Shown here in pieces: positions 1 to 61,100 of a stretch of DNA of 64,000 bases (positions are counted from its first letter, which is position 1; each line of letters starts with the position of its first letter). The stretch spans positions 248,001 to 312,000 of the forward strand of contig JAAOMT010000525.1 in NCBI GenBank assembly GCA_016748015.1, given 5' to 3'. A program made the position numbers and the translations under genes. Origin of the DNA: Geosiphon pyriformis uo1 (taxonomy: Eukaryota; Fungi; Glomeromycota). The notes beneath the pieces were generated by a model. It saw only the letters and a list, made by a program, of their open reading frames with translations. It had not been told where the DNA came from and did not search any database.

Positions 1-478
1 TCTATTGATCTTGAATCAATGATTGTAAGGAGTTCTCTATTTTTGCTTTGGCGTTTTTACTCAAAACAAGTAAAATAATAACTTTTTAAACGGTTTAAGA
101 AAATCTCATTAGTAGTCTTAAACTGTTAATTTTAATGGTTAATGTTAATGTTGATGTTGGTTTTTTTGTTTTTGTTATGTTGCTCTTGTTGTTGTTGATT
201 GAAAAATTGATAAAATTTTCAAGTATAAAAATCTTTTAAAAGGCTTACTATTAAATTCAGATCCCCTTCACACATAAAACTCTATTTATCCCTTTTATAA
301 CGCGATATCTGAAAACCAGTTTTTTTTCAAAGGTTTTTTTATAGTGTCTTCAAATAAGTTGTTTTCATTCAATTTTATTTTTCGTAAAAAAAAAAACTCC
401 CGTATTACGAAATCTTAAGAGTTTGAAATTTGATTGTTAAAATACTAATATTTTTTAAAATAAATTCATAGCTTCATA

Positions 479-1592
479 ATGACACCAACCTTAGACATGA
501 ACGTAGTTCCTATAATAATGAAATACCTACGTCCAAAAGATCTTTACGCTTGTACTCTAGCCAGCAGACAACTTTGCAAAATAGCAATACCAGTACTTTG
601 GGAGTCACCATTTGGGAAATCATTTTCCAGAAATATTGACGTATTTCTTTGCTATCTGGGTTTCTTAAAAGATCAAGAATTACAAGATATACTTCGAAAA
701 TTTAATATACCAGAATTAAAAGCCAAGCACATGTTTACCTCCAATCGACCATTATTCGATTACCCATCATTTATCAGGGAGCTTCATTTCAATGCATTTT
801 TCTTGGTCGGAAGTTTTTTAGAGGATAGAGGGTACCGATGCGATTCTGATATTGACATTTATCCAAACGAGTTGATTCATTTGGTTCTAAAGATTTTTAA
901 AAGACGACGTGTAAGGTTCAATTCTTTCTTAATTAGCGAGAACTCGCAAAAGTTTTATTCGGAGGATTTTCAAATTTTAGAGGATTATCGGTATGCGAAA
1001 TTATTTGCTTCGGTTAAATCGGTTGTTATCGAACGAGTTTTTTATCCAAATCCTTTGATTGAGGTCAAGAGAGTATTCAGTAATTTGGTAAATAAAATGA
1101 AAAAAGAAAAATTTATTTTTTTCTTCAATTTTTGTTGATTGATTTTATGTTAATTTTATAAATTTTTTTTTCTAGGAACATATCGAAATCTGGTTTCGTC
1201 CATTATACACGATTGACCTTATCGATTCTGGGGTAGAACAAATTTGTAACTTTATTGAATCTCAAAAACAATTAATCAGTTTTCGAATTTTCGGTTTAGT
1301 GGATTGGACCTGGGAAATTTTCGAAGCGATCTCGAAACATTCGAATTCTTTGAGATATTTAGAGTTTGATTTAGTTAATTTTCGTGATTGTACACCCGAG
1401 GATTGGCGTGTTATTGTTAAATGTCAGAAATTACGTAAATTAGTGATTACAGATTATGAAAATATTGACGAGGATTGTGCGCGAGAATTACATTCGGGAG
1501 AATTTTTATCCTTGGAAAAGATTAATATTACCAATAAATTATTCAACCGATGTCGAACTTTGGAAGATTGGGTTGAATCGAGAAAGAGGTGA
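479..1592 (+). CDS. F-box domain protein with RNI/LRR-like C-terminus, 2 exons: join(479..1087,1176..1592), ~341 aa
   Basis: N-terminal F-box-like motif (VVPIIMKYL..KDLYACTLASRQLCKIAIPVLWESPF) plus the 'LFDYPSFIRELHF' motif typical of fungal F-box proteins. A GT..AG intron at 1088-1175 joins the two ORFs in frame (..FSNL|EHIEIWF..). A GTGAGT at 1589 could mark a further 3' exon. Confidence 0.85.
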
Positions 1593-2885
1593 GTATGAAG
1601 ATCCAAATATTGTTGGATGGGTTCTTTTTTGTTTTGTTGTTTTTTTTTTTGTATTTTTGTATTTTTTTTTTAAGAAAAAATTGTTTTTATCAAATCCATT
1701 ATATCCAAAAGTAATATTAATAGATTTAAAATAATTCTAAATTAAATAATTAATTTAAAACAATAGGGTTTAAAGGTAAAAAGGCCGAATTTAAATATGG
1801 TAAGAAATTAAGCCTTTTCTCTTTTCAAATAAAACTATTTATTTTTGGATAACTCATATCTAAATAAATACCAAGTTTATTTTCAAAATATGTAAAATTC
1901 AATAATATTACCATAGAAATATTTCGTAAACCATTCAGACTATTGTTTATATTTTGATCCTAGGCTTGGGAATAAGAATATTTCCAAAAATATGTATATT
2001 TTATTTCTGACTAACTTAAAAAAAAATTCCCTCATCATTTGATATTTAGTTTTTAAAGAATGTGATTCTCTTTTTTGAGTAGTTGTGTATATTCTATAAT
2101 TTTTTTAAATTGTTGTTAAAGTCATTTTTCAACACCTTTTCCCGTATAAAATAAAAGTAATTTCAGCGATTTTAAATGTTTTAAATATCTTATTGTTTTC
2201 CCCCCCCCCCCAAAAAAAATTACCTAATCCAATTCTAATAGTTTATATATAGACACTCTAAAAATTTTAAATTTCTAATAAAAAAATGGATTTTTTAAAG
2301 AAATATTTCAGTTATATTCATAGAAAAAATATATATATTATAAAGTCATTTATTATCATGAAAATAAATGTAATATTATCTCACTTACTTTTATTATTTA
2401 TATTTAATTATATTTAAAATGTTCAAAAAGGATAAAACACATAATTCAAAATTTTTTAAAAGAAATATTTTATTAGATTAAAAAAAATGAAACGAACTAA
2501 TACACAGATTATTAAATAGCTGAAATAGTGTGATATATTGCCTCTTCATCAATATCATAAAATATATTTAATATATGCCAAATTTTTATAATTAATGATG
2601 TTTGTCTAAATGATTTATGATAAGAAACACGTATCTATCAACGAAAATTCACAAATAAAGAAACGTCATGGTAAAAATTTAATATATTACCTGAAATCTC
2701 TCCTTAAGAAACGCTTTCATTTAAATTATGTTTAAAATGTATGGAAAACCTATGTTTTTTGGCAATAATTATATGTTACAGTTCATTTTCAGTTGATTCT
2801 TTGATCATTTAGGGAGTTACTTTTTTTCGAAACAAAATCTATTTTTTCTAATCTTTGTATTTTTAAGTCATAATTCAAAGACTAT

Positions 2886-3427
2886 NNNNNNNNNNNNNNN
2901 NNNNNNNNNNNNNNNNNNNNNNNNNNNNNNNNNNNNNNNNNNNNNNNNNNNNNNNNNNNNNNNNNNNNNNNNNNNNNNNNNNNNNNNNNNNNNNNNNNNN
3001 NNNNNNNNNNNNNNNNNNNNNNNNNNNNNNNNNNNNNNNNNNNNNNNNNNNNNNNNNNNNNNNNNNNNNNNNNNNNNNNNNNNNNNNNNNNNNNNNNNNN
3101 NNNNNNNNNNNNNNNNNNNNNNNNNNNNNNNNNNNNNNNNNNNNNNNNNNNNNNNNNNNNNNNNNNNNNNNNNNNNNNNNNNNNNNNNNNNNNNNNNNNN
3201 NNNNNNNNNNNNNNNNNNNNNNNNNNNNNNNNNNNNNNNNNNNNNNNNNNNNNNNNNNNNNNNNNNNNNNNNNNNNNNNNNNNNNNNNNNNNNNNNNNNN
3301 NNNNNNNNNNNNNNNNNNNNNNNNNNNNNNNNNNNNNNNNNNNNNNNNNNNNNNNNNNNNNNNNNNNNNNNNNNNNNNNNNNNNNNNNNNNNNNNNNNNN
3401 NNNNNNNNNNNNNNNNNNNNNNNNNNN
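2886..3427. other. Assembly gap (N run); additional 20-N gaps at 4605-4624 and 60671-60690
   Basis: Runs of N; all three flank or interrupt the repeat-protein genes. Confidence 1.
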
Positions 3428-4501
3428 AAACGTGATGAGGAGGAAAAACGTTGGGGCAAGTATAAACGTGATGAGTATAAACGTGGAGGTAACGGAAACA
3501 ATAACGGTAACGGAAACATTGGCAGCCAGAATGGAAACAATAACGGAAACAACAATTTAGGAGGAGGATTTAACGGCAATAGCAATGGTAACAACAATCT
3601 TGGCTCATATAATGGCAATAGCAATGGTAACAACAATAGACCATCTTACTGGTATAAACGTGATGAGGAGGAAAAACGTTGGGGTAAATATAAACGTGGT
3701 TTGTATAAACGTGATGAGGAGGAAAAACGTTGGGGCAAGTATAAACGTGATGAGTATAAACGTGGAGGTAACGGAAACAATAACGGTAACGGAAACATTG
3801 GCAGCCAGAATGGAAACAATAACGGAAACAACAATTTAGGAGGAGGATTTAACGGCAATAGCAATGGTAACAACAATCTCGGCTCATCTAATGGCAATAG
3901 CAATGGTAACAACAATAGACCATCTTACTGGTATAAACGTGATTTGTATAAACGTGATGGAAGTGGTAACGGCAATGGAAATGGAAATGTCGGTAGCAAC
4001 AATGGCAATGCTAATGGTAACAACAATGTAGGCGCCAACAATGGCAATGGAAACGGCAACAACAATCTTGGATCCAATAATGGAAATAAAAATGGTAACA
4101 ATAACCTTGGCGCCAATAATGGCAATGCTAATGGTAACAATAACCTTGGCTCCAATAATGGTAATCTCAATGGCAACAATAATCTTGGATCAAATAACGG
4201 AAATAAAAATGGTAACAATAACCTTGGCTCCAATAATGGTAATCTCAATGGCAACAATAATCTTGGATCAAATAACGGAAATAAAAATGGTAACAATAAT
4301 CTTGGATCAAATAACGGAAATAAAAATGGTAACAATAACCTTGGCTCCAATAATGGTAACCTCAATGGCAACAATAATCTAGGTAACAATAATGGAGGTA
4401 ACAACGGGAACAACAATGTAGGAAGCAATAACGGAGGTAACAATGGTAACAACAATGTGGGATCTAACAATGGTGGTGGCAATGGAAATAACAACCGTTA
4501 A
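3428..4501 (+). CDS. 5'-truncated copy of the Kex2-processed Asn/Gly repeat precursor; gap-bounded contig, possibly the misplaced interior of the 60093 copy
   Basis: Open frame from the gap to TAA 4501 with KR-delimited modules and a 181-aa 13-mer repeat tail. Its 5' part matches 60378-60670 in module order and silent variants. Confidence 0.7.
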   Translation, partial: KRDEEEKRWGKYKRDEYKRGGNGNNNGNGNIGSQNGNNNGNNNLGGGFNGNSNGNNNLGSYNGNSNGNNNRPSYWYKRDEEEKRWGKYKRGLYKRDEEEKRWGKYKRDEYKRGGNGNNNGNGNIGSQNGNNNGNNNLGGGFNGNSNGNNNLGSSNGNSNGNNNRPSYWYKRDLYKRDGSGNGNGNGNVGSNNGNANGNNNVGANNGNGNGNNNLGSNNGNKNGNNNLGANNGNANGNNNLGSNNGNLNGNNNLGSNNGNKNGNNNLGSNNGNLNGNNNLGSNNGNKNGNNNLGSNNGNKNGNNNLGSNNGNLNGNNNLGNNNGGNNGNNNVGSNNGGNNGNNNVGSNNGGGNGNNNR

Positions 4502-4627
4502 AGAGTTATAAGCTCGAACAATTTTTCATATTAGCATTTCTTTTGTTCATAGCGTAGAATATTTAAAAAATATTTGATCCTTCTTTTTATCAATTTGCAT
4601 TTGCNNNNNNNNNNNNNNNNNNNNTCT

Positions 4628-4635: not shown

Positions 4636-4720
4636 TAAAGCTTTCCCGTTAAATTTTTACCCATCTCATCAAGAAGAAAAGCTTCTCTTTCTAAATCTTT
4701 TACACTCAAAGAATTAAAAA

Positions 4721-6211
4721 ATGTCAAAAACTAGCATTTGCCTTAGCATTTTGTTTGCCAGCACCCTGGTGCTCGGAGAGCCATTTCCTTATTGGTATAA
4801 ACGCGGAGGTAACGGAAACAATAACGGTAACGGAAACATTGGCAGCCAGAATGGAAACAATAACGGAAACAACAATTTAGGAGGAGGATTTAACGGCAAT
4901 AGCAATGGTAACAACAATCTCGGCTCATATAATGGCAATAGCAATGGTAACAACAATAGACCATCTTACTGGTATAAACGTGATGAGGAGGAAAAACGTT
5001 GGGGTAAATATAAACGTGGTTTGTATAAACGTGATGAGGAGGAAAAACGTTGGGGCAAGTATAAACGTGATGAGTATAAACGTGGAGGTAACGGAAACAA
5101 TAACGGTAACGGAAACATTGGCGGCAACAATGGAAACAATAACGGAAACAACAATCTAGGAGGAGGATTTAACGGCAATAACAATGGTAACAACAATCGC
5201 GGCTCATCTAATGGCAATAGCAATGGTAACAACAATAGACCATCTTACTGGTATAAACGTGATTTGTATAAACGTGATGGAAGTGGTAACGGCAATGGAA
5301 ATGGAAATGTCGGTAGCAACAATGGCAATGCTAATGGTAACAACAATGTAGGCGCCAACAATGGCAATGGAAACGGCAACAACAATCTTGGATCCAATAA
5401 TGGAAATAAAAATGGTAACAATAACCTTGGCGCCAATAATGGCAATGCTAATGGTAACAATAACCTTGGCTCCAATAATGGTAATCTCAATGGCAACAAT
5501 AACCTTGGCGCCAATAATGGCAATGCTAATGGTAACAATAACCTTGGCTCCAATAATGGTAATCTCAATGGCAACAATAACCTTGGCGCCAATAATGGCA
5601 ATGCTAATGGTAACAATAACCTTGGCTCCAATAATGGTAATCTCAATGGCAACAATAATCTTGGATCAAATAACGGAAATAAAAATGGTAACAATAACCT
5701 TGGCGCCAATAATGGTAATCTCAATGGCAACAATAACCTTGGAGCAAATAACGGAAATAAAAATGGTAACAACAACCTTGGCTCCAATAATGGTAATCTC
5801 AATGGCAACAATAACCTTGGCGCCAATAATGGCAATGCTAATGGTAACAACAATCTTGGATCCAATAATGGAAATAAAAATGGTAACAATAACCTTGGCG
5901 CCAATAATGGCAATGCTAATGGTAACAATAACCTTGGCTCCAATAATGGTAATCTCAATGGCAACAATAACCTTGGCGCCAATAATGGCAATGCTAATGG
6001 TAACAATAACCTTGGATCAAATAACGGAAATAAAAATGGTAACAATAACCTTGGCTCCAATAATGGTAACCTCAATGGCAACAATAATCTAGGTAACAAT
6101 AATGGAGGTAACAACGGGAACAACAATGTAGGAAGCAATAACGGAGGTAACAATGGTAACAACAATGTGGGATCTAACAATGGTGGTGGCAATGGAAATA
6201 ACAACCGTTAA
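4721..6211 (+). CDS. Secreted KEX2-processed repeat protein (KEP), Asn/Gly-rich, 496 aa, intronless
   Basis: Hydrophobic signal peptide MSKTSICLSILFASTLVLG and 10 KR sites. These delimit EPFPYWY, two 57-aa NG modules ending RPSYWY, DEEE x2, WGKY x2, GLY, DEY and DLY. A 311-aa C-terminal domain of 13-aa repeats follows. Confidence 0.9.
   Translation: MSKTSICLSILFASTLVLGEPFPYWYKRGGNGNNNGNGNIGSQNGNNNGNNNLGGGFNGNSNGNNNLGSYNGNSNGNNNRPSYWYKRDEEEKRWGKYKRGLYKRDEEEKRWGKYKRDEYKRGGNGNNNGNGNIGGNNGNNNGNNNLGGGFNGNNNGNNNRGSSNGNSNGNNNRPSYWYKRDLYKRDGSGNGNGNGNVGSNNGNANGNNNVGANNGNGNGNNNLGSNNGNKNGNNNLGANNGNANGNNNLGSNNGNLNGNNNLGANNGNANGNNNLGSNNGNLNGNNNLGANNGNANGNNNLGSNNGNLNGNNNLGSNNGNKNGNNNLGANNGNLNGNNNLGANNGNKNGNNNLGSNNGNLNGNNNLGANNGNANGNNNLGSNNGNKNGNNNLGANNGNANGNNNLGSNNGNLNGNNNLGANNGNANGNNNLGSNNGNKNGNNNLGSNNGNLNGNNNLGNNNGGNNGNNNVGSNNGGNNGNNNVGSNNGGGNGNNNR
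5276..6208 (+). repeat. Coding minisatellite, 39-bp unit encoding (L/V)G(S/A)NNGN(A/L/K/G)NGNNN, ~23-24 units
   Basis: Visible 39-nt periodicity. The tail in 3428-4501 is exactly 130 aa (10 units) shorter. Confidence 0.9.
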
Positions 6212-7982
6212 AGAGTTATAAGCTCGAACAATTTTTCATATTAGCATTTCTTTTGTTCATAGCGTAGAATATTTAAAAAATATTTGATCCTTCTTTTTAT
6301 CAATTTGCATTTGCATAAAAAATTCCATATCTGTATATACCAAAGATCGAATGATGTAGTTAGCCAAGTAAATTTCAATCTAAAAAACCGGCCCTCTACA
6401 TTAATACCATTTTAAATTATTGAATCGATTAAATGTTGTTCCTGAATATTTTTTGAGGCTCATTATTCTTAAGAGGTCGATTCTTAAATTCTTCAAATTT
6501 TATTAGCATTTAGATCAATAAATTTTTGATACGATTTTTATTCTGATTTATAAACTTGGGAAGAAGGATGCATCTTATTTTATTGAAATGAAGGCAATTT
6601 TTTATTAATACTAAAAGTGATCTAATTTTTAAAAAATGCGAATGTTTTGCGGCAAAATTTTGTTCTTGTAATTAAGTACAAATTCATTACAACACGTCAA
6701 TATTTCCTGAGGAGAAAATTAAGGGTCCATGAAGTAGTCTTAAAGATTTTTTAAGAAACTAATCTTTTTTTACCTGTAACAATATCCAAAAGCTCATTCA
6801 TAGCTTCAAGGACTGCTTCTGAGGCAGTTGATTATTTATTAGATTATTGATATAAAACACGCTAAATAGTGCTTTTAGAGGTCATTAATGTTTGGAAATG
6901 TGAATTCAAAAAAATAAAGACAAAAAACTATTTCGGGCATTACCATTTTCTTGCTTTATTTTTTATTTTTTTTTTGATCGATCTATTTTGTTATCTATCA
7001 GTCAATAATAAAAATAGAAAGAAATTTTTTTGCTTCTTTTCTCTCTTTCATAAATATGCAATAATAATAAGATGATAGTAGTACTTCATAAATATTTCTA
7101 TGAACCCCATCATCTTTAGCTTTTAACTTTTATAATCGCGAAAACCTTGATATGAAAAAAAAAGATTTCTGAACCCAAACTTCAAATTTCATTTTAGAAC
7201 AAATTCTCTAAATAAAAATTAATTTTTATTATTTATTTTGAAGAGAAAAATACTTAAAATTTTATTCCCAAGTGTTCCATGATCTTTTAAATTAATTGAC
7301 TTTAAAAAGATTTTTTCCAATTTCTTTAATTTCTTTTAGAGCGACTTAGGTACAAAGAAAATAATAATAATAATAATAATAAACCTGACATCCTTATTTT
7401 TATATTTAAGGCCTGAATTAGAAAACATAAAAACTCTGCAAAGTCATTAAAATGGAAAAGTATTCAGAGAAACACACTATCTAGCGTTAACATGGTAAAT
7501 AAAAATTGCCTTTTAAAAAAATTCAATATCAACTTTATTCTATACAAGATCATCGACAAAAAATTATGGAGAATCCTTGTCACACAGCAAGAACGAAACT
7601 TGTTCCCACACACAAAATCATATAATGCAACAATGGCATTTGGCTGAGTTACATGCATGAAAAAATAATAAGGCTCATCATGTTTATTAATAAAAAAAGT
7701 TTATTTACATTCTTGATGATGATGAATCAAGATAATTCAGTACAAGAGATTTATAAGAGGGAGAGTTTTCACTAATTTAATAATATTAAGTCTAAGTGAA
7801 AAGTGAAAATTTAATTCCAGAAGGTGATGTTCGAGGAAGGTAATATATTAATAAAGGGGAAATTATACAAAATTATATATATCTTTGGTTTTACAACGAT
7901 TTTTTGGCAAATGTACTGATACAATTGCAATTCAGAAAAATAAAATTAGACATTGGATTTCACAAAAATTAATTAAATTAAA

Positions 7983-8774
7983 TTAAATTATATGGAATGG
8001 ACCGCTGTAAAGAATAAGGAAAAAGTGAAATCTGCGTTAGACAATGAAAATAGTACCTTGTACATTTCGATTCATCAAATCAAATATGAATAAAATTCTC
8101 ACCTAAAAGTAATACAGTTTGGACCTTCAGCACTACTTCCCCAACTTTTCAGTGTAAACTTAGTGGCAGTATCATCGTTGCCATAGGTGACCCAGTCGAC
8201 AGTGTTCGGAATTGTAAGAGTGGTAACAAGAGATGCTTCACCATGCCCATCAAATGGTACTTTCTCTGAACCAACTCGGAGGTCAGCAACCCAACCATGT
8301 TCGTAGTACAACTCAACAGAATCAATAGCATTGATGAGAGAATCATTTTTCTCGTAGTAAACTTTGATGGGCTGGCCTCTTTGAAAGGTTTCCGATCCTT
8401 CTGGTGATACAATCTTGAAATCTGTCAAGCAACAGACAAAAAGGATGCGAAATTGGTCAGTAACAAGACTCGGCTTGTTTAAAGAAAAGTTATAGGAGGT
8501 TTTCTTTTTGACATTCAAACATACCTTGACAATTCATTACGATGGGACCATCTGTTGAGTAAAAACAAAAATGGTAAAAATTTTAAGAGAGATTTTTGAA
8601 AGAAATATTTTTTTGATTCTTGCAAAAATGAGTCAGTCAAATTATTCAATAGATTTTAATATTACCTCTTTGGCGTAAATTTAAGGGTATTGCGCTAGTT
8701 TGTAAAATGCATAGGAGCAATATACTTGAGATCAATAGTAGAACGGTTGAAAGGAACTTGGTATTTGAAATCAT
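7983..8774 (-). CDS. Small secreted protein with Kre9/Knh1-like Ig-fold signature, 4 exons: complement(join(7983..8004,8103..8421,8525..8551,8666..8774)), 158 aa
   Basis: Spliced product MISNTKFLSTVLLLISSILLLCILQTSA-IPLNLRQR-DGPIVMNCQDFKIVSPEG...GPNCITFSGPFHII. All introns are GT-AG, the last has a CTAAC branch point, and the total of 477 nt is in frame. The I-x-S-P start and S-x-x-F-x-I end resemble PF10342. Confidence 0.8.
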
Positions 8775-10129: not shown

Positions 10130-10924
10130 ATGTATTACACAAAATTCACTTTGATAATATTAGTTCTCTTATGTGTCTGTTCCATGTTCGTCAATGCGGC
10201 CCCGAGTAGACTAAGTAAAAAGATATATGATTTATAGTTGAAAGATAAATAAATTTTTTTTAAACCTTAGGGAGAGATAAAAATTAATTCTTTTTTCGAT
10301 TCTTCCCATAACAATTACAATAGAGATCGGAAAACGTGATCCAAAATGTTCAGGTAAAAAACTTTTTACCAAATTGGAATTCAAAAGTTGCTTGCACATC
10401 TTTACAATATATCACCAAGTAATTGAAATACTAGCTAAATGTAATTTAATTTTTATCTTCGACATGTATTTCACACAACCCTGCATATTCAGAGTTTAAA
10501 ATAATTAGCCCAAAATCTGGTGATGCTCTACCTAAAAATGGTCAAGTGACGGTTCAATACAAGAAAAATGGATCAGGAGTTGACGAAGTTACCTCGGTTG
10601 ATCTATACTACGACAAAGGTGTCGTCGCATTCCTACCTACCCAAAAAACAAAATTTGACTCAAATGGTATCGCTAAAATCAAGATTAAATTAGATATGCC
10701 CAATAATTCAGATATAAAGTTGGGAAAAGGCCCTGGCACGACTAATTTCAAGTTTAAGAGTTGGGCTAATACTCGTGAGGGTCCTCATTGTACTACTTTT
10801 AGGTGAGGGTTTTTTTTTTCTTTTTTAAAAGCTATGAAGATTATATGAACTTTCATTTCTGATAATTGACCGATTTTCATTCGAATGAATTTTCAATAGT
10901 GATGATTTCAAGATTGCCCCTTAA
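10130..10924 (+). CDS. Paralogous small secreted protein, 4 exons: join(10130..10214,10324..10353,10493..10802,10900..10924), 149 aa
   Basis: Product MYYTKFTLIILVLLCVCSMFVNA-APSRLKIGKR-DPKCSEFKIISPKSG...KFKSWANTREGPHCTTFSDDFKIAP. Intron phases (1,1,2) and the two mature-domain Cys match the minus-strand paralogue. An alternative first donor exists at 10206. Confidence 0.8.
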
Positions 10925-29254: not shown

Positions 29255-32200
29255 ATGGCTCAAGAACCTTTACAACAAAACATTCTGATTGCCCTCCAAG
29301 GTATACAGACTGCTTTAGGACAAAGAAACAACACCCTATTACTATTAATCAGAGATGATGCCCAAGATCCAATCAAATGGCTAGATGATTTTGAGAAAAC
29401 TGCCACAGTAAACCAATATAATAATGAATACAAGTTTTAAATCGTTGGTGGCTACCTCTAAGGCTCTCCTGCTACTTGGTTCTTACAAAAAATTAATGCC
29501 AATGCTCAACAAAAAATTATTAGATAGGCACCAGCAAATGCTAGAAAAGACAACATCTCTTTTACTATTCAGTTTGAAACAAAATTCAGAATTCCAATAT
29601 TAATATCCAAATGGCACATGGAACTGGAAAGAAAAACCCAAAGCCCTAGAGAAGTAGTGACAAAATATGCCAAAGCAATAAGAAAACTTATTAAATGAGT
29701 AGATTCTGGAAGAAATTGGACAGAAGAGCAGAAAATACATTCCTTCACAAAAGAATTGAGAACTGATCTATCATATGCTCTTTGGCCTCTCTTGGCTTTA
29801 AAAAACAACCCAACAATGGACATGGCCATTGAACTTGCCCAATGAATTGAAAACAACCAAAGGATGCATTTGGGATCCATGCTTCTGCTTCTATTATGGC
29901 TCCTGCTCCACAAATGGCTGCGACCTTTTTTGCTGCCCAAACTTAAAACCCAAATGAACATTTAATAGATAGGCTCACAGCAAATCTTGCCTGACTATTA
30001 GAACCTTTGGCCCAAGCAGTTAAAGAAAATCAACAACTCCAAAGACCCAGATTTGAACTTTGCTTCAATCAGCCTCAACAACCACCATATCAAAGACAGC
30101 AAAATTGTGATCCACCTGTGTGCTATTGCTGTGGACTAACTGAACACTTTTTAAGAAACTGCAACAATCCTCTATTGTCCCCTCCAGCTCTTAAAAACAA
30201 TGACAATCAAAACAACAGAACCACCAACAATAATGTTCCCAACCAAAGACCCAATCATGCCAACATCAATTTCTTTAGAGAGGATCCCCTAGTTGAAGCC
30301 ACTGTTTATCAGCCTTTAAACTAGTAGGTGCACTTCCAAAGGGTAAGAGTGCAAGCCAATCAGAAAAAAACTTTTTTTATGCTTTTAACCTAACTGATAA
30401 TGATTATGATATGGATGAACTAGCAATCAACACCTCTGAATCAACCAGAAAGAAGAAGAAAGCCAAGGCTAACTTTATCTTAGACCCAAACAAAACATTC
30501 AAATCATCTGCTAACAACAACAAGCCACCAAAGGTTAAAGTTTTTAAAAATTTTCCAAAGTTAGAACCCCTAAAAATTGTACAAAAATCTGAATTCTATT
30601 TTGTTGTTAAAGATTTCATAAAAACCCCAGCACACATTACATTTGGCCAACTAATGACTCATCCACAGTTTAGAAAAGATCTTCACAAATCATTGATACC
30701 AAAGAAGAAAACACCAAAGACCAATAAATGCCCATGTCAAGCTGGACTTGCTGACAACAGCAATGTTACCCCTCTGATTTGCAAAGCCCAAGTGGCTGGC
30801 TACTTTATTGACTTGATTCTAGACAGTGAATTATCTGTCAGTGTAATTGCCAAACACTTTCTGGAAGCCATTGGAAGAAAAATTGATGAGCCTTCCACAA
30901 GACCAATAACTAATGTACATGGTGACAAGAAGAAAAGTCTGGGCATAGCCAAAGCTATTCCTGTCCACATCAATAGTATCAGCATTGAAACAGATATGGA
31001 AGTATCTGAAGCAAAAAAGTACATCATCATTGTTGGTAATAAATGGTTTAAAAAAGCCAAAGCACTACTTGACTATAAACTTTGTAAGCTAACCATCAGA
31101 TATAGTGAGAAACCCATTGTGGTTAAATGCCGACATTGAACAACTCCTCCAGTACCCAAGCAGAACCAAAAAGAAGAACAATCAGATGAATCAGATAATA
31201 ATGAGAGCAATGATGAAAAAGATCAAAAAGAACCAGAAGAAACTGCTGAACTTGTTTATACCATCTTCACCAGCAATAGCAAGCCACTGGACAATGTTAA
31301 AGCTAACAAAGAAGAAATCATGGTAAATGGCAAACTAATTTGCTGGCCCTACTATGATATCCTCAGAAGAATCTTTGACAAGAAACCTAGCAAGAAAGCA
31401 AAATACAGTTATTGGTGTTATGGCTTTTGTGCACAGTACTAGTGTAATAAACCTTTGTATTCACCAAGTGATGAATGCAAATCCTGCTTAATCTACTACA
31501 AAGATTGGAAACCAATTAGCTTAATACCTTAAGAAGAACTTAAAGAAATACAAAAGTTTTTTGAGAATGAACCACCTAAAATCCAATCACTAGTTGTAGA
31601 ACAAAGAAAACCTTTCCCTAAAGAAAAAAAAGTAAACATTGAAAATCTGTTGCCTAGAAATAGCCTAGTTATCTCAAAAGAAAGTGATGCCCTTGGACGA
31701 ACTTATGTGATACAATACACTATCACCACCAAAGAAACTTACCTTATCCATTTGAAGCCTTATCAATTCAATTGACACAATAATGAGTTTATCAAAAAAG
31801 AGATAAACCGGATAAAAGATCTTGAATTCATATAAGAAACCAAGAGTAAATGGGCTTTTCCAGTTGTAGTGGTATCCAAGAAAGGTGGAACCCTACACTT
31901 CTGTGTTGACTACTACCAATTAAATGCCATTACTATAAGAGACATGTACTCACTTCCCAAAATTGATGCAATGCTAGATAAATTCAATGGTGCTGCTTTC
32001 TTCTCAACCATTGACTTAACTGCTGGATTCGGGCAAGTAGAGATGAATTCAAAAAGCAGAAAGAAAACTGCTTTTATCACCAAGTATGGCATCTATGAAT
32101 TCACAGTCATGTCTTTTGGTCTCACCAATGCTCCTTCCACCTTTCAATGTTTGATAGACAAAGTATTTGAATCAGTAAAAAAAAACTTTGTCTGGTCTAC

Positions 32201-34378
32201 TTAGATGACATAATAGTCTACTCAAAAATCTGGGATGAACATCTTGAACATTAACAGAAGGTTTTTGACCTGCTCAGAAATGCTGGCCTTAAGATTAACC
32301 CAATTAAATCTTTCTTTGGACATCAATTCACCCAGTTTCTTGGTCATTTGATTACAAAAGATGGAATCTTCCCTGATCCAGCTAAAGTTAAAAAAGTTCA
32401 GAACATTAGACAATTAATAAATGTTCTTGAACTATGCTCTTTTCTTGGTTTGGCCTTTTACTATCACAAATTTGTAAAGGATTTCTCCAAAATTGCCTTT
32501 TTTCTCAATCAGCTACTCAAGAAAAATGTCAATTATTACTGGAGCACTTATCAACAAAAAGCTTTTGAAATTCTGAAGGAAAAACTTGTTACTGAACCAA
32601 TTCTCAAGCAACCTAATCTAGACCAACCTTTCATCCTCCACACTAATACATCTGGCTATGGACTTGGTGCTGTTTTTTCACAGAAAGATGAAAATGACAG
32701 AAAACATGCCATAGCATATGCCAGTAGATTCTTTACACCAGCAGAAAAAAACTATTCAGTTACCAAACAGGAATACTTAGCAGTAGTCTGGGCTACTAAT
32801 TACTGGGATCAATATCTTTTTGGTGCAAAATTCTTAGTGATAACAGATTATCAAGCCTTGGTTTGGCTCCACAATAAAAAGAAGCTAGAACACAAATGAA
32901 TAAATTGCTGGATATTCCACTTGGATAAATTCAACTATGATATTCAACACCACAAAGAAGCAAATCATCAAAATGCTAACACTCTTTTTAGACTTACCAT
33001 CCAGTAATAATACAACCTCTTAAACCAAATCAACTTAATTATTAATTCTTTCATAAACAAACATAATAATGGACTTGAACAACTACTCTGCTTTAATGAA
33101 ATTTTTGGGTAAAGGACAATATCCACCAGAATACACCTGATAGCAAAGAGAAAAATTGTGCAAACAATCAAATTTCTATTTAATCTATCAGAACCAATTA
33201 TACAAAAGAAACAAAAAAGATCCTGACTGCCCCCAGAGAGTCATTAGATTTGAAAAAAGAGAATTTGTAATATACAACATGCACATTGACCCATTAGTTG
33301 GACACTTTGGAAAAACAAAAACAATTCAGAAAATTTTAGCTTGCTATTATTGACCTACCTTGGGAAAAGACATTGCTGAATACATTAAAACCTGTGACAT
33401 CTGCCAAAGAAGAGGCAAACCCAATCACAAAAAAGATATCCATCCAATCTCTATTGGTCAACCATTTGACAGAATTGGTATAGATGTTGTTAAATCTTTA
33501 ACAATCACTCCTAATGGCAACAGATATATTATTACAGCTACTGACTATCTTACAAAGTGGGTAGAAGCAAGAGCCACCCCAGATCAAACAGCAGTCTCAA
33601 TAGCCAATTTCATTTATGAAGATATCATCTGCCATTATGGCTGTTCCAAAAAACTTTTATCTGATAGAAGAAGAGCTTTTCTCAATACACTGGTTGAAGA
33701 ACTTTGCAGAAAAATGAGAATACATTATAAAATTTCCTTCCTTTATTACCTTCAAACAAATGGCCTAGTGGAATGTTTCAATAGAACATTATGTGAAACC
33801 CTAGCCAAAACTAATGAAGAAACAAACTTATGGAACAAAGTACTGTCTTCAGCTTTGTTTGCTTATAGAAATGTGAATTATAACATAACAAGTTATGAAC
33901 CTTTTTATCTGCTCTATGGATACATGGCAACACTATCAATAGAAACTGATATTGAAACAATACCCTTTGAAGAGATCACAATAGGGAATTACAAAGCCAT
34001 TTTGTAAAGAAAACTTGGTACCATTCTTGACTTCTTGGTAAAAGCACAAATAATTGCTTTTAAAAAGATAAAACAATTCCAAGAAAAGCTTAAAAAAAAA
34101 ACCTATAAAACACTTTCTTTAAGTGTTGGTGACTTGGTACTAGAATACTGTTCTAACAGAAACAATATTTATGGTGATAAATTTTCTAACTAGTGAAAAG
34201 GACCCTTTATAGTCAACAAAGTCTTGAACAATGGTTTTTATATTCTTCAAGATCAATTCAGAACAATCTTCAATAATTATCTTGTTCATGGTACACGACT
34301 CAAGAAATATCATAAACGACCTAATTGGCTGCCTGTTGTGGTAATACTAACTCAAATAATCAGCAAAAATCAAGTATA
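29255..34378 (+). pseudogene. Disrupted gag-pol of Gypsy element 1
   Basis: ORF fragments 29255-29440, 30007-30324, 30411-31139, 31869-32204, 32348-32899 and 33360-34007 lie in PR-RT-RH-INT order. Confidence 0.9.
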
Positions 34379-34420
34379 AATAAATGCACCATTCCCAAAA
34401 CAGAGGTATCTTCAATCGAC

Positions 34421-35077
34421 ATGAACAATTATTTTCTGGATCAAAACATTCAAAACATCTTCTATACTCTTCATGAGTATTGGATCAAAAACTATCTAAA
34501 TGCTAGTCTGATCATTGGAAAACAAACCACCATAACCAATAATAGTAGAACATATACTATTATTAAACCAAAGAAAACTACTATCAGAAGAGAAAAAATT
34601 GATAGTAAAATAGATAAATATCTGTTGAAAAGTATAACAGCAGTTATACTTCCACCTTCCAACACAATTAAAAAAACACTTCAAGAAATCTTACCCATAG
34701 ACAAAAACTTGTCATATGGAAGGCAATTAAAACTCTATGGTCGCCTTGGTGAAATCATAGAGGATATAAAACTCATGAAGAAAACAACTTCAGAGATACA
34801 GACAGAAATTTTGGGCATTATATGGTTAGATGTCTCAAGAGTTTTAACTATTGCTAGAAGAGCCAAAACTTTAATACAAAGATTTGGTTTCTTGAATACA
34901 AAACTCATTTTGCCTCAAGCATTATATACTTTATCCACAAAAGACTTCAACAAACTAGTTAGTCTTGAGTTAGATAAAACCCTTCCAATAGATTACACCA
35001 TAAATAGCTTGATTTTGCCAGAGCTTAATCTCTTTAGAGAAGATAATGTTATGGTTGAAACTTATATTTCTTATTAA
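34421..35077 (+). CDS. Additional ORF of unknown function between pol and the 3' LTR
   Basis: Uninterrupted frame of ~218 codons from ATG 34421 (open from 34325), running across the PPT into the LTR. No obvious signal peptide or TM segment. Confidence 0.5.
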   Translation: MNNYFLDQNIQNIFYTLHEYWIKNYLNASLIIGKQTTITNNSRTYTIIKPKKTTIRREKIDSKIDKYLLKSITAVILPPSNTIKKTLQEILPIDKNLSYGRQLKLYGRLGEIIEDIKLMKKTTSEIQTEILGIIWLDVSRVLTIARRAKTLIQRFGFLNTKLILPQALYTLSTKDFNKLVSLELDKTLPIDYTINSLILPELNLFREDNVMVETYISY

Positions 35078-46309: not shown

Positions 46310-47139
46310 TATTATGAGAGTGTTTTCTTGGTATATTTTAATTATTGATATCTCATTTTAATTGCAATCAGTCTCTTGTGAGTTTTTCGACTTTATGTGT
46401 TGAATATTAATGATAATATATTGAAGGTTTTCTCTTGATGTTGTGATGTAAGTTTTATTTTTAATTTTAATTGTCTTTGTATGTTGTGTACTTCTTTTCA
46501 GAGGCTAATCTGAAATCTACCTGCTGTCTGGGGCTATCTTTGCAATTGTCTAATGTGTTTTTCTAATTTAGAAACACAGAATGTTAATGGTTTTTTTGCA
46601 ATTTCCCTAAGTATATAATAAAGTTTTTTTAATTTAATTAGTAACTACATGAATAATTTTGATCAGAAATTATTCTTTCAAAGGATTCAAAAATGGAATA
46701 ATAGTCTTATTTGCTAAAAAGAATATATAAATTCTATTGTTAATTTCGTAATTTTAATGTTCATTCAATTTATTATTTTTTTTATTAATTTTTTTTGAAT
46801 AAGATTTTATTTAAATATTTGTTGTTTTGAGTTGAAGCTGCTTTATTCTTCATTATTAAAAACTATTGCATATATATATAATTATTGTTTTACAAAATAA
46901 CGTCTTGTAATATTCTATTTTCATTATTTCTAAATAAGGTTTGCTACTATTGTGAAATAGTGCTTATTGCTTTTGCACAATAGTACTTGTTGCTATTGTA
47001 AAATAGTGCTTGCTGCTATTGCATAATAGTGCTTGCTGTTATTTGTAAATCATTTCTTTTTATATATTATTACTGTGCTATTTTATAATTAACTAATTTA
47101 TATTATTTATAATTTCTATTAAATTCTTGAACTATAATA
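46310..47139 (-). mobile_element. Solo LTR (830 bp) inserted into pol of Gypsy element 2
   Basis: Perfect 4-bp TSD TTGG (46306-46309 and 47140-47143), eroded TA..TA ends, and an LTR-type internal tandem repeat with TATA. Removing it restores the frame NLTKL*TFL. Confidence 0.8.
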
Positions 47140-48404
47140 TTGGTTAAATTGGTGAGTACTGAAAAGTTTTTAACTATCTTAATTTTGTCTGGATCTGTCT
47201 TGATTCCGTCTTTGCTTACAACATGTCCCAAAAATTTTAATTTTGTTTTTTCAAAAAAATATTTGTTGGCATTTAGCTTTAGTTTTGCTTTTCTTAATCT
47301 TTCAAATACTTGCTGTAAATAATGAAAATAGTTATCAAATATCTTTGAAAACACATTGGTATTATCCAAATATATGACTACTGATTTCTATAACAATCAC
47401 ATATAGACAATTTTTATGAGTTGTTAGAATATTGCTAGAACATTTATTAAGCCAAATAATATTACTTTTAACTCAAAATTTTCTTCTCAAGTTGTAAAAG
47501 CTGTTTTCTTCTTATCTTCTGATTTCATGATTACTTGCCAATAACTGCTATTCAAATTTAATATTAAGAACCATTTCTTTTCTCCAAAAGCATTGAAAAG
47601 TTCTTGGATCTTTGAAGTTGGCTAGCTATCTCTTTTGGTTACTTCAATAAGTTTTTAGTAATTCACACAAAACCAAATTTTCTCATTTTTTTTCGAACTA
47701 ATACAACTGGTAAAGATTATAGACTTATTGATAGTTAAATTAACTTATTGTTCAGCATTCTATTAATTTTTTGGTAAATAATTTTATGGCTGGTTGGTGG
47801 TACTTGGTATACTTTTTGTTTTATTGGCATGGTATTTTCAGTTTTAATTTGGTGTTGGATTATGTCATTTCTGCTAAATTTATTTTTACTCACAAAAATG
47901 TTGGTGAAATTATTGAGTAGTATTTTGAGTTGTATCTGTTGTAATGGGTCTAGATTTTCTAAGTTTATCTGTTTTAATTGTTTTAGTTAAAGCAAATAAC
48001 ATTTGTTCCATTTATAGATTGTTTGTAATATAATATCCACATATTTGCAAAGCTGTGTAAAATTTAGAATGGTGTTTGGTAGTTGTTCTTCAACTTCAAT
48101 ACTTAAATATCTGATGGTAGTTTCTTTTAGTATCTCAATAATATCTTCTGTTGTATTGTAAATAAGAATTTTGATATGTTTCGGGCTTTTGGCTGGTATG
48201 TAAAAATTGGTAAGTCTAATCTTTTCTAATTCACAAATGATAGTTTTTACTTCAAAAATTTAAGCTTGATCCTTTACTCTTTTTTCTATGGCTAATATGT
48301 ACTAGTTATATGATAGAATAAAAATTGGTTGATAAATAAAGATAATTTTTTCTTTGTCAACAATTTTTTTCTTTGTCATATTGACTGGTATATTTATTTT
48401 ACTT

Positions 48405-57351: not shown

Positions 57352-60300
57352 AAAGGTAAATGTAAAAAAGCCGAATTTAAAAATGGCAAAAAATTAACCC
57401 TTTTCTCTTTCAAATAAACCCATTTATTTTTGGACATTCAAAGAAACTAAGGTTTTCAACTCATTTCTAAATAAAAACCAAGTTTATTTTTTTATATATG
57501 GTTTAATTTCAAAATAAGTAAAATTCAATAATATCCCATAGAGAAATTTCGCAAACCATTTAGACTATTGTTTATATTTTGATCTTAGGCTTGGGAACAA
57601 GAATATTTCCAAAAATATTTTTTTTCTGACTAACTAAAAAAAATCCCTCATCATTTTATATTTGGCTTTTAAAGAATGTGATTCTATTTTTTGGGTAGTT
57701 GTGTATAATCTATGATTTTTTATATTGTTGTTAATGTTATTTACAACACCTTTTTCCGTATAAAATAAAAGTAATTTCAGCGATTTGAAATTTTCAAACA
57801 TCTTTTTTATTCCCCAAAAAAATTACCTCATCCAATTCTAATCGTTTATATATAGACACTCTAAATTTAAAATTTCTAATAAAAAAATATATTCTTTAAA
57901 GTAATATTTGAGTTATATTCATAGAAAATATATATTTATAAAGCCATTTATTATCATGGAAATAAATGCAATATTATCCCACCTACTTTTGTTATTTACA
58001 TTTAATAATATTAAAAACATTCAAAAAGGATAAAACACATAATTCAAAAATTTTTCAAAGAAATATTTTGTTAGATTAAAAAGAATGAAACGAAGTAATA
58101 CACACTCAGTACAGAGTATTAAATAGCTGAAATAGTGTGATACATTGCCTCTTCATCAATGTCATAAAAAATATTTAATATATGCCAAATTTTTATAATT
58201 AATGATGTTTGTCTAAATGATTTATGATAAGAAACGCGTATCTATCAACGAAATTCACAAATGAACAAACGTCATGGTAAAAATTGAATATATTACCTGA
58301 AATCTCTCCTTAAGGAACGCTTTCATTTAAATTATGTTTAAATGTATGGAAAATCATGTTGCCTGACAATAATTATATGTTACAGTTCATTTTCGGTTTA
58401 TTCTTTGATCATTTAGGGAGTTACTTTTTGTCGAACAAAATCTATATTTTCTAACCTTTGCATTTTTAAGTCAAAATTCAAAGGCTATTTTTGTCACAAG
58501 AGAATTTACATTGTCTCATCGTTACTGATTATTACCCCATTTAATTTTGACCCAATTTTGTATGTATCGACATTTGGCGAGAGGTTTTGATAGGTCAAAG
58601 AACATGTGAGATTTAAAAAGGTGAAAAAATATTATATTTTTAACAACAAATTAAGTATTCATTATTTCCCTGACTTTTTAATGGGAAACAAAAGATGTGA
58701 ATAAGAATGTTCTAGCCACATTTCTTTAAAAAATATTTCCATAATATATTTTTTTAAGCGAAACTGATCATAAAATTCATTAAAAAGTTTCTTGGTTCAA
58801 TTTTTTTAGTAATTTAATTATTTTTGTTCGAAAGAAATATCGAGACAATTTTATTCCAAAATCGTAAAGTTTAAATTACTTTTCAAAAAACCAGCTTTTT
58901 TTAAGATAAAACGGAAAAAATATTTTCCTCAACAAAACCTGTTTTACCTAGAACTAAACCAGATTTTTGTTTTTCATAATATTAATTTATTAGAAAATGA
59001 AACCAATTTTGTAATTTTTATAGCAGTAATAACTACAATCAACTGGTTTTGCCCAAGAAGATTAACCGGATAATTAGAGAAAGGGAAATAATTTTATCTT
59101 TCAAGAATTGTTCTCGCTTTTCTTTTTTCAAATCCCCCAAATCAAAGATGTTGGAATGAAATATTTTTCGATTTTTTTTCTGATTTAAATCTTGTAGGAA
59201 TAAAATAAAATTTTCATATTTAAAGATATCCAATCCATCGATCAAAACATCTAAAAAAATTTCAAAAGCCTAAGCCAATTTTTTGGAAAAGCCACCTTTA
59301 AATTTTAATTATGAAGGAGGTTTCAATATTGAGTTTTTGATTCATTTCGCAGCGCCGAAAAATTTCTTTTAAACGTATTTTCAAATTTTGTAAAAGGATT
59401 TTTTTCAGGTTTTACAGCCGAAATCTCAAAACTGCAGTAAAACGATTGGATATCTCAAAATTAGGATATATTTGGAAGGATAAACAGGGGTAAAACTTCC
59501 CCAACCAAAAAGCCTGTAAATAATAAAATTTTTTTATCAAAGATCAAAAGATCTGCGGATTATCAAAAAATTTGCCCATTAACCGTCATCATCATCAATA
59601 AAATAAGCCATCAAATGGCTTGGTTCCCTTTAAAGTATTAACCGCTGAATCCTTTTTTGTAACTATAACTTAATTATCATGGCCTTTGCCCACCTTTAAT
59701 TTTTGTAGGTTTAAATTGTCAAATTTCAGGCTAAACTATTGTGAGAGAATTGATTATCAGTCATGTTGATTTTTGCCAAGTAACTGGGCTTGGATCTCAA
59801 ATTTTAGATAATCAATCATTTTGTTCCATTATTATTATTAGAGGAAAAACAGGTGGGCTTATTATATGAGTTCTCACAAAATTACCCAAATAAGTGATGA
59901 AAAGTCAAATTTAACGAAAATGAATTTTGAAGAAAGGAAGCCACAGTTTTCAAAACTGTTTCTCTAAAAAAACATATAATTTACTAGCAAAACGATTTCT
60001 TATAAAAGTAAAGCTTTCCCGTTAAATTTTTACCCATCTCATCAAGAAGAAAAGCTTCTCTTTCTAAATCTTTTACACTCAAAGAATTAAAAATGTCAAA
60101 AACTAGCATTTGCCTTAGCATTTTGTTTGCCAGCACCCTGGTGCTCGGAGAGCCATTTCCTCTTTGGTATAAACGCGGAGGTAACGGAAATAATAACGGT
60201 AACGGAAACATTGGCAGCCAGAATGGAAACAATAACGGAAACAACAATTTAGGAGGAGGATTTAACGGCAATAGCAATGGTAACAACAATCTCGGCTCAT

Positions 60301-61100
60301 ATAATGGCAATAGCAATGGTAACAACAATAGACCATCTTACTGGTATAAACGTGATTGGTATAAACGTGATTTGTATAAACGTGATGAGGAGGAAAAACG
60401 TTGGGGCAAGTATAAACGTGATGAGTATAAACGTGGAGGTAACGGAAACAATAACGGTAACGGAAACATTGGCAGCCAGAATGGAAACAATAACGGAAAC
60501 AACAATTTAGGAGGAGGATTTAACGGCAATAGCAATGGTAACAACAATCTTGGCTCATATAATGGCAATAGCAATGGTAACAACAATAGACCATCTTACT
60601 GGTATAAACGTGATGAGGAGGAAAAACGTTGGGGTAAATATAAACGTGGTTTGTATAAACGTGATGAGGANNNNNNNNNNNNNNNNNNNNCTTGGATCAA
60701 ATAACGGAAATAAAAATGGTAACAATAACCTTGGCTCCAATAATGGTAACCTCAATGGCAACAATAATCTAGGTAACAATAATGGAGGTAACAACGGGAA
60801 CAACAATGTAGGAAGCAATAACGGAGGTAACAATGGTAACAACAATGTGGGATCTAACAATGGTGGTGGCAATGGAAATAACAACCGTTAAAGAGTTATA
60901 AGCTCGAACAATTTTTCATATTAGCATTTCTTTTGTTCATAGCGTAGAATATTTAAAAAATATTTGATCCTTCTTTTTATCAATTTGCATTTGCGTAAAA
61001 AATTCCATATCTGTATATACCAAAGATGGTTAGCTAAGTAAATTTCAATCTAAAAAACCGGCCCTCTACATTATTACCATTTTAGATTAAAGAATTGATC
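57352..61100 (+). repeat. Segmental duplication copy B of the KEP locus
   Basis: Collinear with 1770-6430. Retains CpG, unlike the flanking transposon DNA. Confidence 0.85.
60093..60891 (+). CDS. Second KEP Asn/Gly repeat precursor gene (interrupted by assembly gap 60671-60690)
   Basis: Identical signal peptide, then EPFPLWY-KR, modules DWY, DLY, DEEE, WGKY, DEY and GLY, and an identical C-terminus ending at TAA 60891. Confidence 0.85.

Follow-up and report, generated by a model that had tools for sequence, protein, structure and literature searches.

A Likely Kex2-Processed, Gly/Asn-Rich Precursor of the RIC Type in Geosiphon pyriformis

The window analyzed here, a 64-kb stretch of the Geosiphon pyriformis genome (24.6% GC; C580:248001-312000 of a 128-Mb assembly), contains at 4721-6211 on the forward strand an uninterrupted open reading frame (ORF) of 496 codons, from ATG to stop, which we call copy B. 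It is a real, unannotated gene of a known, functionally unexplained family, the Gly/Asn (GN)-rich secreted "RIC" proteins of this fungus, to which the multi-site Tyr-Lys-Arg linkers of copy B add a modest new detail. The product is likely to be a Kex2-processed precursor that is cut into Asn/Gly modules, with the short peptides between its cleavage sites arising as by-products of the linkers. The initial annotation had read the 5′ part of the gene as a polyprotein encoding a library of very short Tyr-terminated peptides, and as a possibly undescribed system; Geosiphon GN-rich RIC proteins with Lys-Arg (KR) sites had, however, already been named (PMC8786786).

Anatomy of Copy B and Its Family

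The first 19 residues of copy B resemble a signal peptide, in which MSK forms the n-region, the hydrophobic core spans 15 residues, and positions -3 and -1 are V and G (a call made by eye, with the -3/-1 rule). Residues 20-185 contain exactly 10 Lys-Arg dipeptides, eight of them Y-K-R and two E-K-R, both of the latter after DEEE; none of 100,000 shuffles of residues 21-185 reached 10 KR (the maximum was six) or eight YKR. Cutting at these sites would give, in order, EPFPYWY, a 57-aa module, DEEE, WGKY, GLY, DEEE, WGKY, DEY, a second 57-aa module, and DLY, with RPSYWY at the end of both modules. Translation and shuffles thus bear out the signal peptide, the ten sites, and the product list originally proposed (EPFPYWY, WGKY twice, GLY, DEY, DLY, DEEE twice, and the two modules). 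The span then assigned, 4721-5275, covers all KR cassettes but stops at residue 185 and omits a tail of 311 aa (residues 186-496) that is built of 13-residue Asn/Gly repeats and reaches 6211; because the ORF runs 311 residues past residue 185, the "polyprotein" is mostly repeat domain. The 496-aa protein contains 217 Asn and 116 Gly, and all 12 of its Tyr residues lie within residues 1-185. Neither a hydrophobic tail nor an N-x-S/T sequon is found in the C-terminal module. A Pfam search of the protein returned no family, and an ESM Atlas feature search with it returned no usable match. The features of the gene are listed below; A and C denote near-identical copies in the window, and X1 and X2 sequencing runs, described further on.

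4705-4720 (+): likely 5′ untranslated leader; X2 contigs start at 4705, and the flank is identical to that of copy C, whose leader precedes it at about 60000-60092.
4721-4777 (+): signal peptide, residues 1-19 (MSK, hydrophobic core, VLG), from translation.
4778-4804 (+): short propeptide EPFPYWY and the first KR, opening with two X-Pro dipeptides; from translation, and variable between paralogues.
4805-4975 (+): Asn/Gly module 1, 57 aa, about four 13-residue repeats, with the conserved N-cap GGNGNNNGNGNIG and the aromatic end RPSYWY; from translation and module alignment.
4976-5083 (+): linker 1, KR-DEEE-KR-WGKY-KR-GLY-KR-DEEE-KR-WGKY-KR-DEY-KR, seven KR including the terminal one of module 1; from translation.
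5084-5254 (+): Asn/Gly module 2, 57 aa, ending RPSYWY; from translation and module alignment.
5255-5275 (+): linker 2, KR-DLY-KR, a unit conserved in the diverged paralogue L034; from translation and codon comparison.
5276-6211 (+): 311-aa C-terminal module, which opens with the N-cap DGSGNGNGNGNVG and consists of 13-residue Asn/Gly repeats; its stop codon lies at 6209-6211; from translation and repeat analysis.
6212-6322 (+): likely 3′ untranslated region; X1 and X2 contigs end at 6322, and the same sequence follows copies A and C.

Three Geosiphon cDNAs, GpRIC1-3 (MH580277-9), have been described, and their products (456 aa for RIC2 and 470 aa for RIC3) are GN-rich, with endoplasmic reticulum (ER) signals and KR sites read as Kex2 sites; they account for 22.3%, 5.0%, and 3.0% of the reads of a cDNA library, and such proteins have been treated as intrinsically disordered cell-surface proteins (Schultz et al. 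2022; PMC8786786). Copy B comes from the same organism and resembles these proteins in its ER signal peptide, its Gly/Asn repeats, its size (496 aa), and its KR dipeptides. In these respects it fits the published description of GpRIC1-3 and membership in the GpRIC / Glomeromycotina family of GN-rich secreted, intrinsically disordered proteins. The parts of the GpRIC literature consulted make no mention of Tyr-ending cassettes of three or four residues.

GpRIC transcripts are very abundant in the published library, and the region of copy B has high-depth, transcript-like coverage. Four copies of the gene have to be distinguished here: copies A (3428-4501), B (4721-6211), and C (60093-60891) in the window, and a fourth 24 kb upstream of it (C580:223 kb). 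They are about 97-100% identical over the first 185 residues of B and have their 5′ and 3′ flanks in common. Contigs of three runs from two studies were compared (X1 from a 2019 study, X2 from the genome study). In X1 and X2 they span about 4705-6322, with very high word depth, and do not extend into the spacers on either side, whereas X3 covers gene and spacers evenly, in a DNA-like manner. An abundant transcript with short untranslated regions would give such coverage, in agreement with the published abundance of RIC transcripts, and the gene is probably highly expressed, although contigs cannot prove transcript ends or levels. Several copies appear to contribute to the X1 coverage, since loose ends of X1 contigs (EEKR-DLY) match the upstream copy at C580:223 kb.

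Relatives in Paraglomus brasilianum (Pabra_AGL1/2) and Ambispora leptoticha (Amlep_AGL4/5) are given in the supplement of PMC8786786. Like copy B, these proteins have a signal peptide, a short propeptide that ends in KR, a module start NGNGNGNGN[IV]G, and the 13-residue NGN repeat, and KR is kept at the same places (..EKR at the propeptide and ..HKR between modules in Pabra_AGL2, ..IKR in Amlep_AGL4/5). Unlike copy B, they are shorter and lack both the Tyr before KR and the short peptides between KR sites. Homologues keeping neither KR nor the Tyr before it had been named in the initial annotation as a refutation of its reading; KR is kept in Paraglomus and Ambispora, but the Tyr is not.

The genome was searched with the copy B protein and with a diverged paralogue. 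More than 20 distinct secreted proteins share the 13-residue repeat x-NGN-x-NGN-x-N-h-G-x, and the only strong database relatives are G. pyriformis "hypothetical proteins" at NCBI. Four architectures are found: KR-free members (L021, L022, L023, and L025); members with a single KR behind a short propeptide; modules of 65-91 aa joined by single H-KR, V-KR, or I-KR junctions (L030-L032 and L011); and multi-KR linkers with short non-repeat peptides, the class of the C580 cluster, L008, L013, L034, and P0005. The conserved module start G-[GS]-x-NGN-x-NGNGN-[ILV]-G stands directly after the last KR of every linker. Over the whole family KR occurs 120 times, compared with 10 KK, 5 RR, and 3 RK.

An exact look-up of six full-length family ORFs (copy B, L008, L011, L014, L030, and L032) in a collection of 15 billion proteins found none of them, so public annotation seems to miss, truncate, or mis-model the gene family. 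The annotated family fragments P0002-P0005 are only 98-263 aa long. When proteins were searched for RIC-named sequences or for homologues in Glomeromycotina, the only matches were "hypothetical proteins" of G. pyriformis and a small number of repeat proteins from metagenomes. The latter, which look bacterial (P0021-P0024, P0006, P0008, and L035:4001-5419), carry the same 13-residue repeat in the form x-F-N-G-N-x-N-G-N-x-N-V-G (E about 1e-21); they also have a signal peptide, their C-terminal domain is globular, and they end in a hydrophobic/Arg tail of PEP-CTERM-like character. One of them, P0022, which was considered in connection with a cyanobacterial origin of the repeat, lies on a contig of 58% GC with uninformative neighbours. 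The likeness in the repeat may reflect convergence or an old transfer.

Processing Sites and Short Peptides

The genome encodes a kexin (C608:604 kb) with a P_proprotein domain (53 bits), behind which come a transmembrane segment and an acidic tail, and it also carries genes for a DPP-IV-type enzyme (DPPIV_N match) and for S10 carboxypeptidases (Peptidase_S10). The claim of a secreted precursor with Kex2-type sites is supported by these genes, by the excess of KR over other dibasic pairs, and by the position of KR at module boundaries. Yeast alpha-factor ends at a Y-K-R site (..PMY-KR). For Kex2, Arg is required at P1, Lys is preferred at P2 and an aliphatic residue such as Leu at P4, and P3 is not contacted by the enzyme (PMC8528282); x-L-Y-K-R fits the rules for P1, P2, and P4 and is, by sequence, therefore a near-ideal Kex2 site. 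The module ends that stand before such units (Y-W-Y-KR, W-W-W-KR, and D-D-W-KR) present a bulky or acidic P4.

In the sequence of events that we propose, the signal peptide would be removed, a Golgi kexin would cut after each Lys-Arg, and a Kex1-type S10 carboxypeptidase would trim the basic residues. The main products would be the two 57-aa Asn/Gly modules ending RPSYWY and the single 311-aa repeat domain, all with the same N-cap, and they may function extracellularly, as an abundant material of the wall, the matrix, or the interface, by analogy with the Rep1 repellents of Ustilago maydis. The Tyr-ending peptides of three or four residues would be pieces of multi-site linkers that separate the modules, released as by-products, and the x-L-Y-K-R units would provide high-quality kexin sites behind a bulky aromatic module end. 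Their role as linker rather than product is supported by the variation in unit number and order between copies that are about 97-100% identical, and by the many family members in which junctions consist of one H-KR, V-KR, or I-KR or in which KR is missing altogether. The caveat first attached to the peptides, that they may be only spacers, is now judged the more likely reading.

In their DNA, the short units of the C580 cluster are blocks of 15 nt (GAT nnn TAT AAA CGT) and 18 nt that lie one to three substitutions apart, and their codons are the same as those of the module end TGG TAT AAA CGT; linker 1 of copy B is composed of such 15- and 18-nt units with the common codons TAT AAA CGT (Tandem Repeats Finder period 51). 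Copy B has the order DEEE, WGKY, GLY, DEEE, WGKY, DEY; copy C has DWY, DLY, DEEE, WGKY, DEY, and the upstream copy a single linker with DEEE, DLY, DEY. The EPFPLWY and DWY originally noted in a paralogue are both present in copy C. This pattern looks like the duplication of a cleavage site. Neutral replication stutter was rejected as a full explanation of the short units, DLY-KR having been kept through synonymous divergence: KR-DLY-KR is encoded by AAA CGT GAT TTG TAT AAA CGT in copy B and by AAG AGA GAC TTA TAT AAG AGA in L034, where the junction reads W-KR-DLY-KR, so that six of the seven codons differ, all synonymously, between proteins whose modules are only 65% identical. Because the amino acids are kept through these six changes, the comparison indicates that the DLY-KR unit is under purifying selection.

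Comparable units recur across the family, with DPQEY, DPLLY, DPLVY, and IEE-R in L008, DPWGAY in L013, DLY in L034, and YLY, DVS, and YELK in P0005. The motif x-L-Y is thus found also in L008, P0005, and L034, with C-terminal ALY and RLY in L008 and L024, and copy B shares WG[KA]Y-KR with L013 and with the C609 lineage. Tyr ends 11 of the 22 lineage-unique internal non-repeat segment types (background 3.3%), and outside the C580 cluster 9 of 24 non-repeat segment types open with X-Pro (DP, EP, NP, or YP; background Pro 1.1%); in both counts each type is taken once per lineage, and both are still inflated by common descent. The enrichment of Tyr before KR that the initial annotation described is thus real. 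Its suggestion that Ste13 could trim EPFPYWY to YWY fared differently: the propeptide reads EPFPYWY in B, EPFPLWY in C, and EPFPRWD in the copy 24 kb upstream, and a YWY released as a conserved product is rejected on this ground.

L008 (C773:416301-417770, minus strand) is a protein of 490 aa with 19 KR and 30-aa modules ending W-W-W-KR. One of its junctions is degraded to W-W-W-Q-R, and IEE-R stands in place of KR before two modules; the gene is a useful natural series for the site requirements of kexin.

The recurrence of these units can be read in another way, with the Tyr-ending peptides xLY, DEY, DWY, and WGKY (possibly also YWY, once trimmed by Ste13) as the intended products and the Asn/Gly modules as their carriers; the peptides would be signals or effectors directed at the Nostoc partner or at the fungus itself, or substrates for Tyr cross-linking. 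We regard this as unlikely. It would account for the Tyr ends of the internal segment types, for a D-L-Y-K-R kept through six synonymous codon changes, and for xLY and WGxY in at least four diverged lineages, and removal of the X-Pro starts outside the cluster would convert DPLLY to LLY and DPWGAY to WGAY, matching the peptide types of copy B; Ste13 signatures have been regarded as marks of the hormone-like peptides of KEPs (Le Marquer et al.). Unit copy number and order vary between near-identical copies, however, and EPFPYWY is replaced by EPFPLWY or EPFPRWD in other copies. The short peptides and the Tyr before KR are both missing from many family members and from the relatives in Paraglomus and Ambispora. 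Shared ancestry of a duplicated 15-nt unit raises the Tyr counts, and a simpler account of L-Y-K-R is that it makes an optimal kexin site. Searches for UstYa and tyrosinase genes, silent on control genomes too, gave none, and we know of no unmodified fungal signalling peptide of three or four residues. The specific proposal that x-L-Y, D-E-Y, and W-G-x-Y (after Ste13-style removal of X-Pro in paralogues) are genuine, abundantly released Tyr-terminal tri- and tetrapeptides that serve the symbiosis of Geosiphon with Nostoc in their own right, whether by signalling to the cyanobiont or by cross-linking the Asn/Gly matrix through Tyr, seems quite unlikely to us; if true, Kex2 would release a class of products much below the length of the KEP peptides described to date.

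It is also conceivable, if doubtful, that the protein stays uncut or is only partly cut, and that its KR, Tyr, Trp, Asp, and Glu cassettes are charged and aromatic "stickers" (through cation-pi or Tyr contacts) in a long, disordered Asn/Gly wall or adhesive protein. The aromatic and charged residues are all concentrated in the cassettes, and a composition of G, N, Y, K, R, and W recalls adhesive low-complexity proteins. AlphaFold2 gives no confident structure either for the mature protein as a single sequence (predicted local distance difference test score, pLDDT, 31.6) or for module 1 with a 14-module alignment (pLDDT 36.3), and a disordered protein at the cell surface is how the family has been treated (Schultz et al. 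2022; PMC8786786). The strict order of Lys before Arg that the dipeptide counts reveal would not, however, be needed for a purely electrostatic role. In relatives KR falls precisely on the module boundaries and behind the propeptide, the genome has a kexin gene, and KR is kept through synonymous change (AAA CGT versus AAG AGA).

Several points weigh against processing into Asn/Gly modules as we propose it. Membership in the RIC family rests on the published description of GpRIC1-3 rather than on alignment with MH580277-9, and the cleavage, the location of the products, and their role we infer from sequence features. The enrichment of Tyr at P3 is strong, beyond what kexin specificity alone would produce given that Kex2 makes no contact there, and the short non-repeat segments of the paralogues often open with X-Pro of the Ste13 type, which in alpha-factor marks a product and not a spacer. 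No record states whether X1 and X2 are RNA or DNA runs, and reads are shared among near-identical paralogues, so that expression is not assignable to copy B. The low pLDDT values of the mature protein and of module 1 likewise say nothing on the physical nature of the modules.

Paralogues, Assembly, and Neighbouring Genes

The two further copies in the window are as follows.

3428-4501 (+): tandem paralogue A, which repeats the cassettes and has two modules but a shorter tail; a 542-N gap (2886-3427) takes the place of its 5′ end.
60093-60891 (+): paralogue C, with EPFPLWY and then, after module 1, DWY, DLY, DEEE, WGKY, and DEY; a 20-N gap (60671-60690) lies inside it.

Copy A is present in the NCBI annotation only as part of model G9A89_006378 (P0001, 697 aa; window 464-4501, forward strand). 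This model looks chimeric, joined across the 542-N gap: its first approximately 345 residues correspond to an F-box-like gene at 464-1731, and the remainder to paralogue A (3440-4501).

All three N-gaps of the window (2886-3427, 4605-4624, and 60671-60690) touch RIC-like copies, and two are exactly 20 N (scaffold joins), so repeat numbers and the A-B junction are uncertain. In run X3, the sequence hidden in gap 4605-4624 resembles the region upstream of copy C, and at position 4716 the X2 and X3 contigs have one A fewer, as does copy C. It might be supposed that the cassettes are produced by mis-assembly of repeats, or that the gene is no longer alive; copies A, B, and C all have N-gaps beside or inside them, repeat arrays are of unequal length between copies, and degenerate copies lie nearby (L010 with nine stops, L007 with a TAG). 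Such an artefact is highly improbable: the ORF is intact from ATG to stop, the same cassettes appear in four copies that were assembled separately, as well as in the contigs of three runs that are independent and come from two studies, and the variant junction EEKR-DLY in X1 matches the copy at C580:223 kb.

C580 carries a cluster of at least eight genes or gene remnants of the family at about 184-309 kb, with retroelements between them: at 184.0 kb (P0002, with a TAG), 221.0 kb (L010, a dead copy with nine stops), 222.8-223.7 kb, 239.9 and 242.4 kb (two KR-poor members), and 251.4, 252.7, and 308.1 kb. Between copies B and C are Ty3/gypsy-type retroelement ORFs (gag zinc-knuckle, reverse-transcriptase, and integrase-like) and further fragments, at 29995-35074 (forward strand) and 47106-47387 (reverse strand). 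Two small ORFs, 8102-8533 (reverse strand) and 10450-10803 (forward strand), have in common the motif ..SP..G....G..i.V.Y.. and give weak, sub-threshold matches to Big_7; they may encode a pair of small secreted or wall proteins.

Known Precursors and Significance

The closest parallel that we draw, by architecture and literature alone, is with Rep1 of U. maydis, which Kex2 cuts into multiple short (37-aa) peptides that form amyloid-like fibrils on hyphae; its products are structural or surface-active rather than hormonal, and it carries no Ste13 signature (PMC6339444; PMC8528282). Rep1 and copy B both have a signal peptide and KR-separated modules of tens of residues; Rep1 peptides are amphipathic in contrast to the Asn/Gly repeats of copy B, and a relationship in sequence is not expected. 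Rep1 also yields one long C-terminal piece, as the 311-aa tail of copy B would be, but each of its linkers, as far as we know, is one KR site, with no mini-peptides in tandem.

Alpha-factor-type and other KEPs (Le Marquer 2019; Umemura 2020) resemble copy B in the logic of signal peptide and KR processing, and some of its paralogues in having X-Pro after KR (KR-DP, KR-EP, KR-NP, or KR-YP). Unlike them, copy B has no repeated peptide of 9-13 residues, its units being 57 aa or 3-4 aa long, and the alpha-factor-type Ste13 signature is absent, with no KR in copy B followed by X-Pro or X-Ala and EP-FP occurring only after the signal peptide. KEPs have been defined by a signal peptide, four or more fragments, 2 aa or longer, cut at KR or RR, at least three similar fragments that make up at least 15% of the protein, and Kex2 in the genome (Le Marquer et al. 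2019). Copy B gives 11 fragments and its genome encodes a kexin, but its repeats fall short of this definition: it has only two 57-aa modules, its three xxY tripeptides make up less than 2% of the protein, and the pipeline leaves the C-terminal fragment out of account. With its three modules, the sister copy at C580:223 kb would pass on repeats.

Dikaritin precursors (of ustiloxin and phomopsin), which are peptides made by ribosomes and modified after translation (RiPPs), share with copy B short Tyr-containing cores flanked by KR, and differ from it in that the inter-KR segments of copy B are only 3-4 aa and have no recognition flank. A search of the whole genome for UstYa/DUF3328 (PF11807) and tyrosinase (PF00264) gave no candidate, though control genomes were silent too, and Pfam found no UstYa/DUF3328- or tyrosinase-like match among the ORFs of the window. 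A dikaritin-type RiPP is thus not supported, the silence of the controls making the genome search weak evidence. To our knowledge, dikaritins do not occur outside the Dikarya.

Geosiphon is, as far as we know, the only fungus that houses a nitrogen-fixing cyanobacterium inside its cells, and RIC-type transcripts, which reportedly make up approximately 30% of a cDNA library, are unexplained in function. The family is larger than the three named cDNAs, with more than 20 genes, several of them in a cluster of approximately 125 kb, and has a common plan of an N-capped Asn/Gly module, an aromatic end, and then a KR linker. The L-Y-K-R and WGxY-K-R units and the X-Pro starts of the paralogues give concrete masses for peptidomics, and the same features would show cleanly whether structural precursors pass through the Kex2/Kex1/Ste13 route in early-diverging fungi. 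Should the mini-peptides be active, they would represent a new type of symbiosis signal; if they are not, copy B would be one more Rep1-like matrix precursor.

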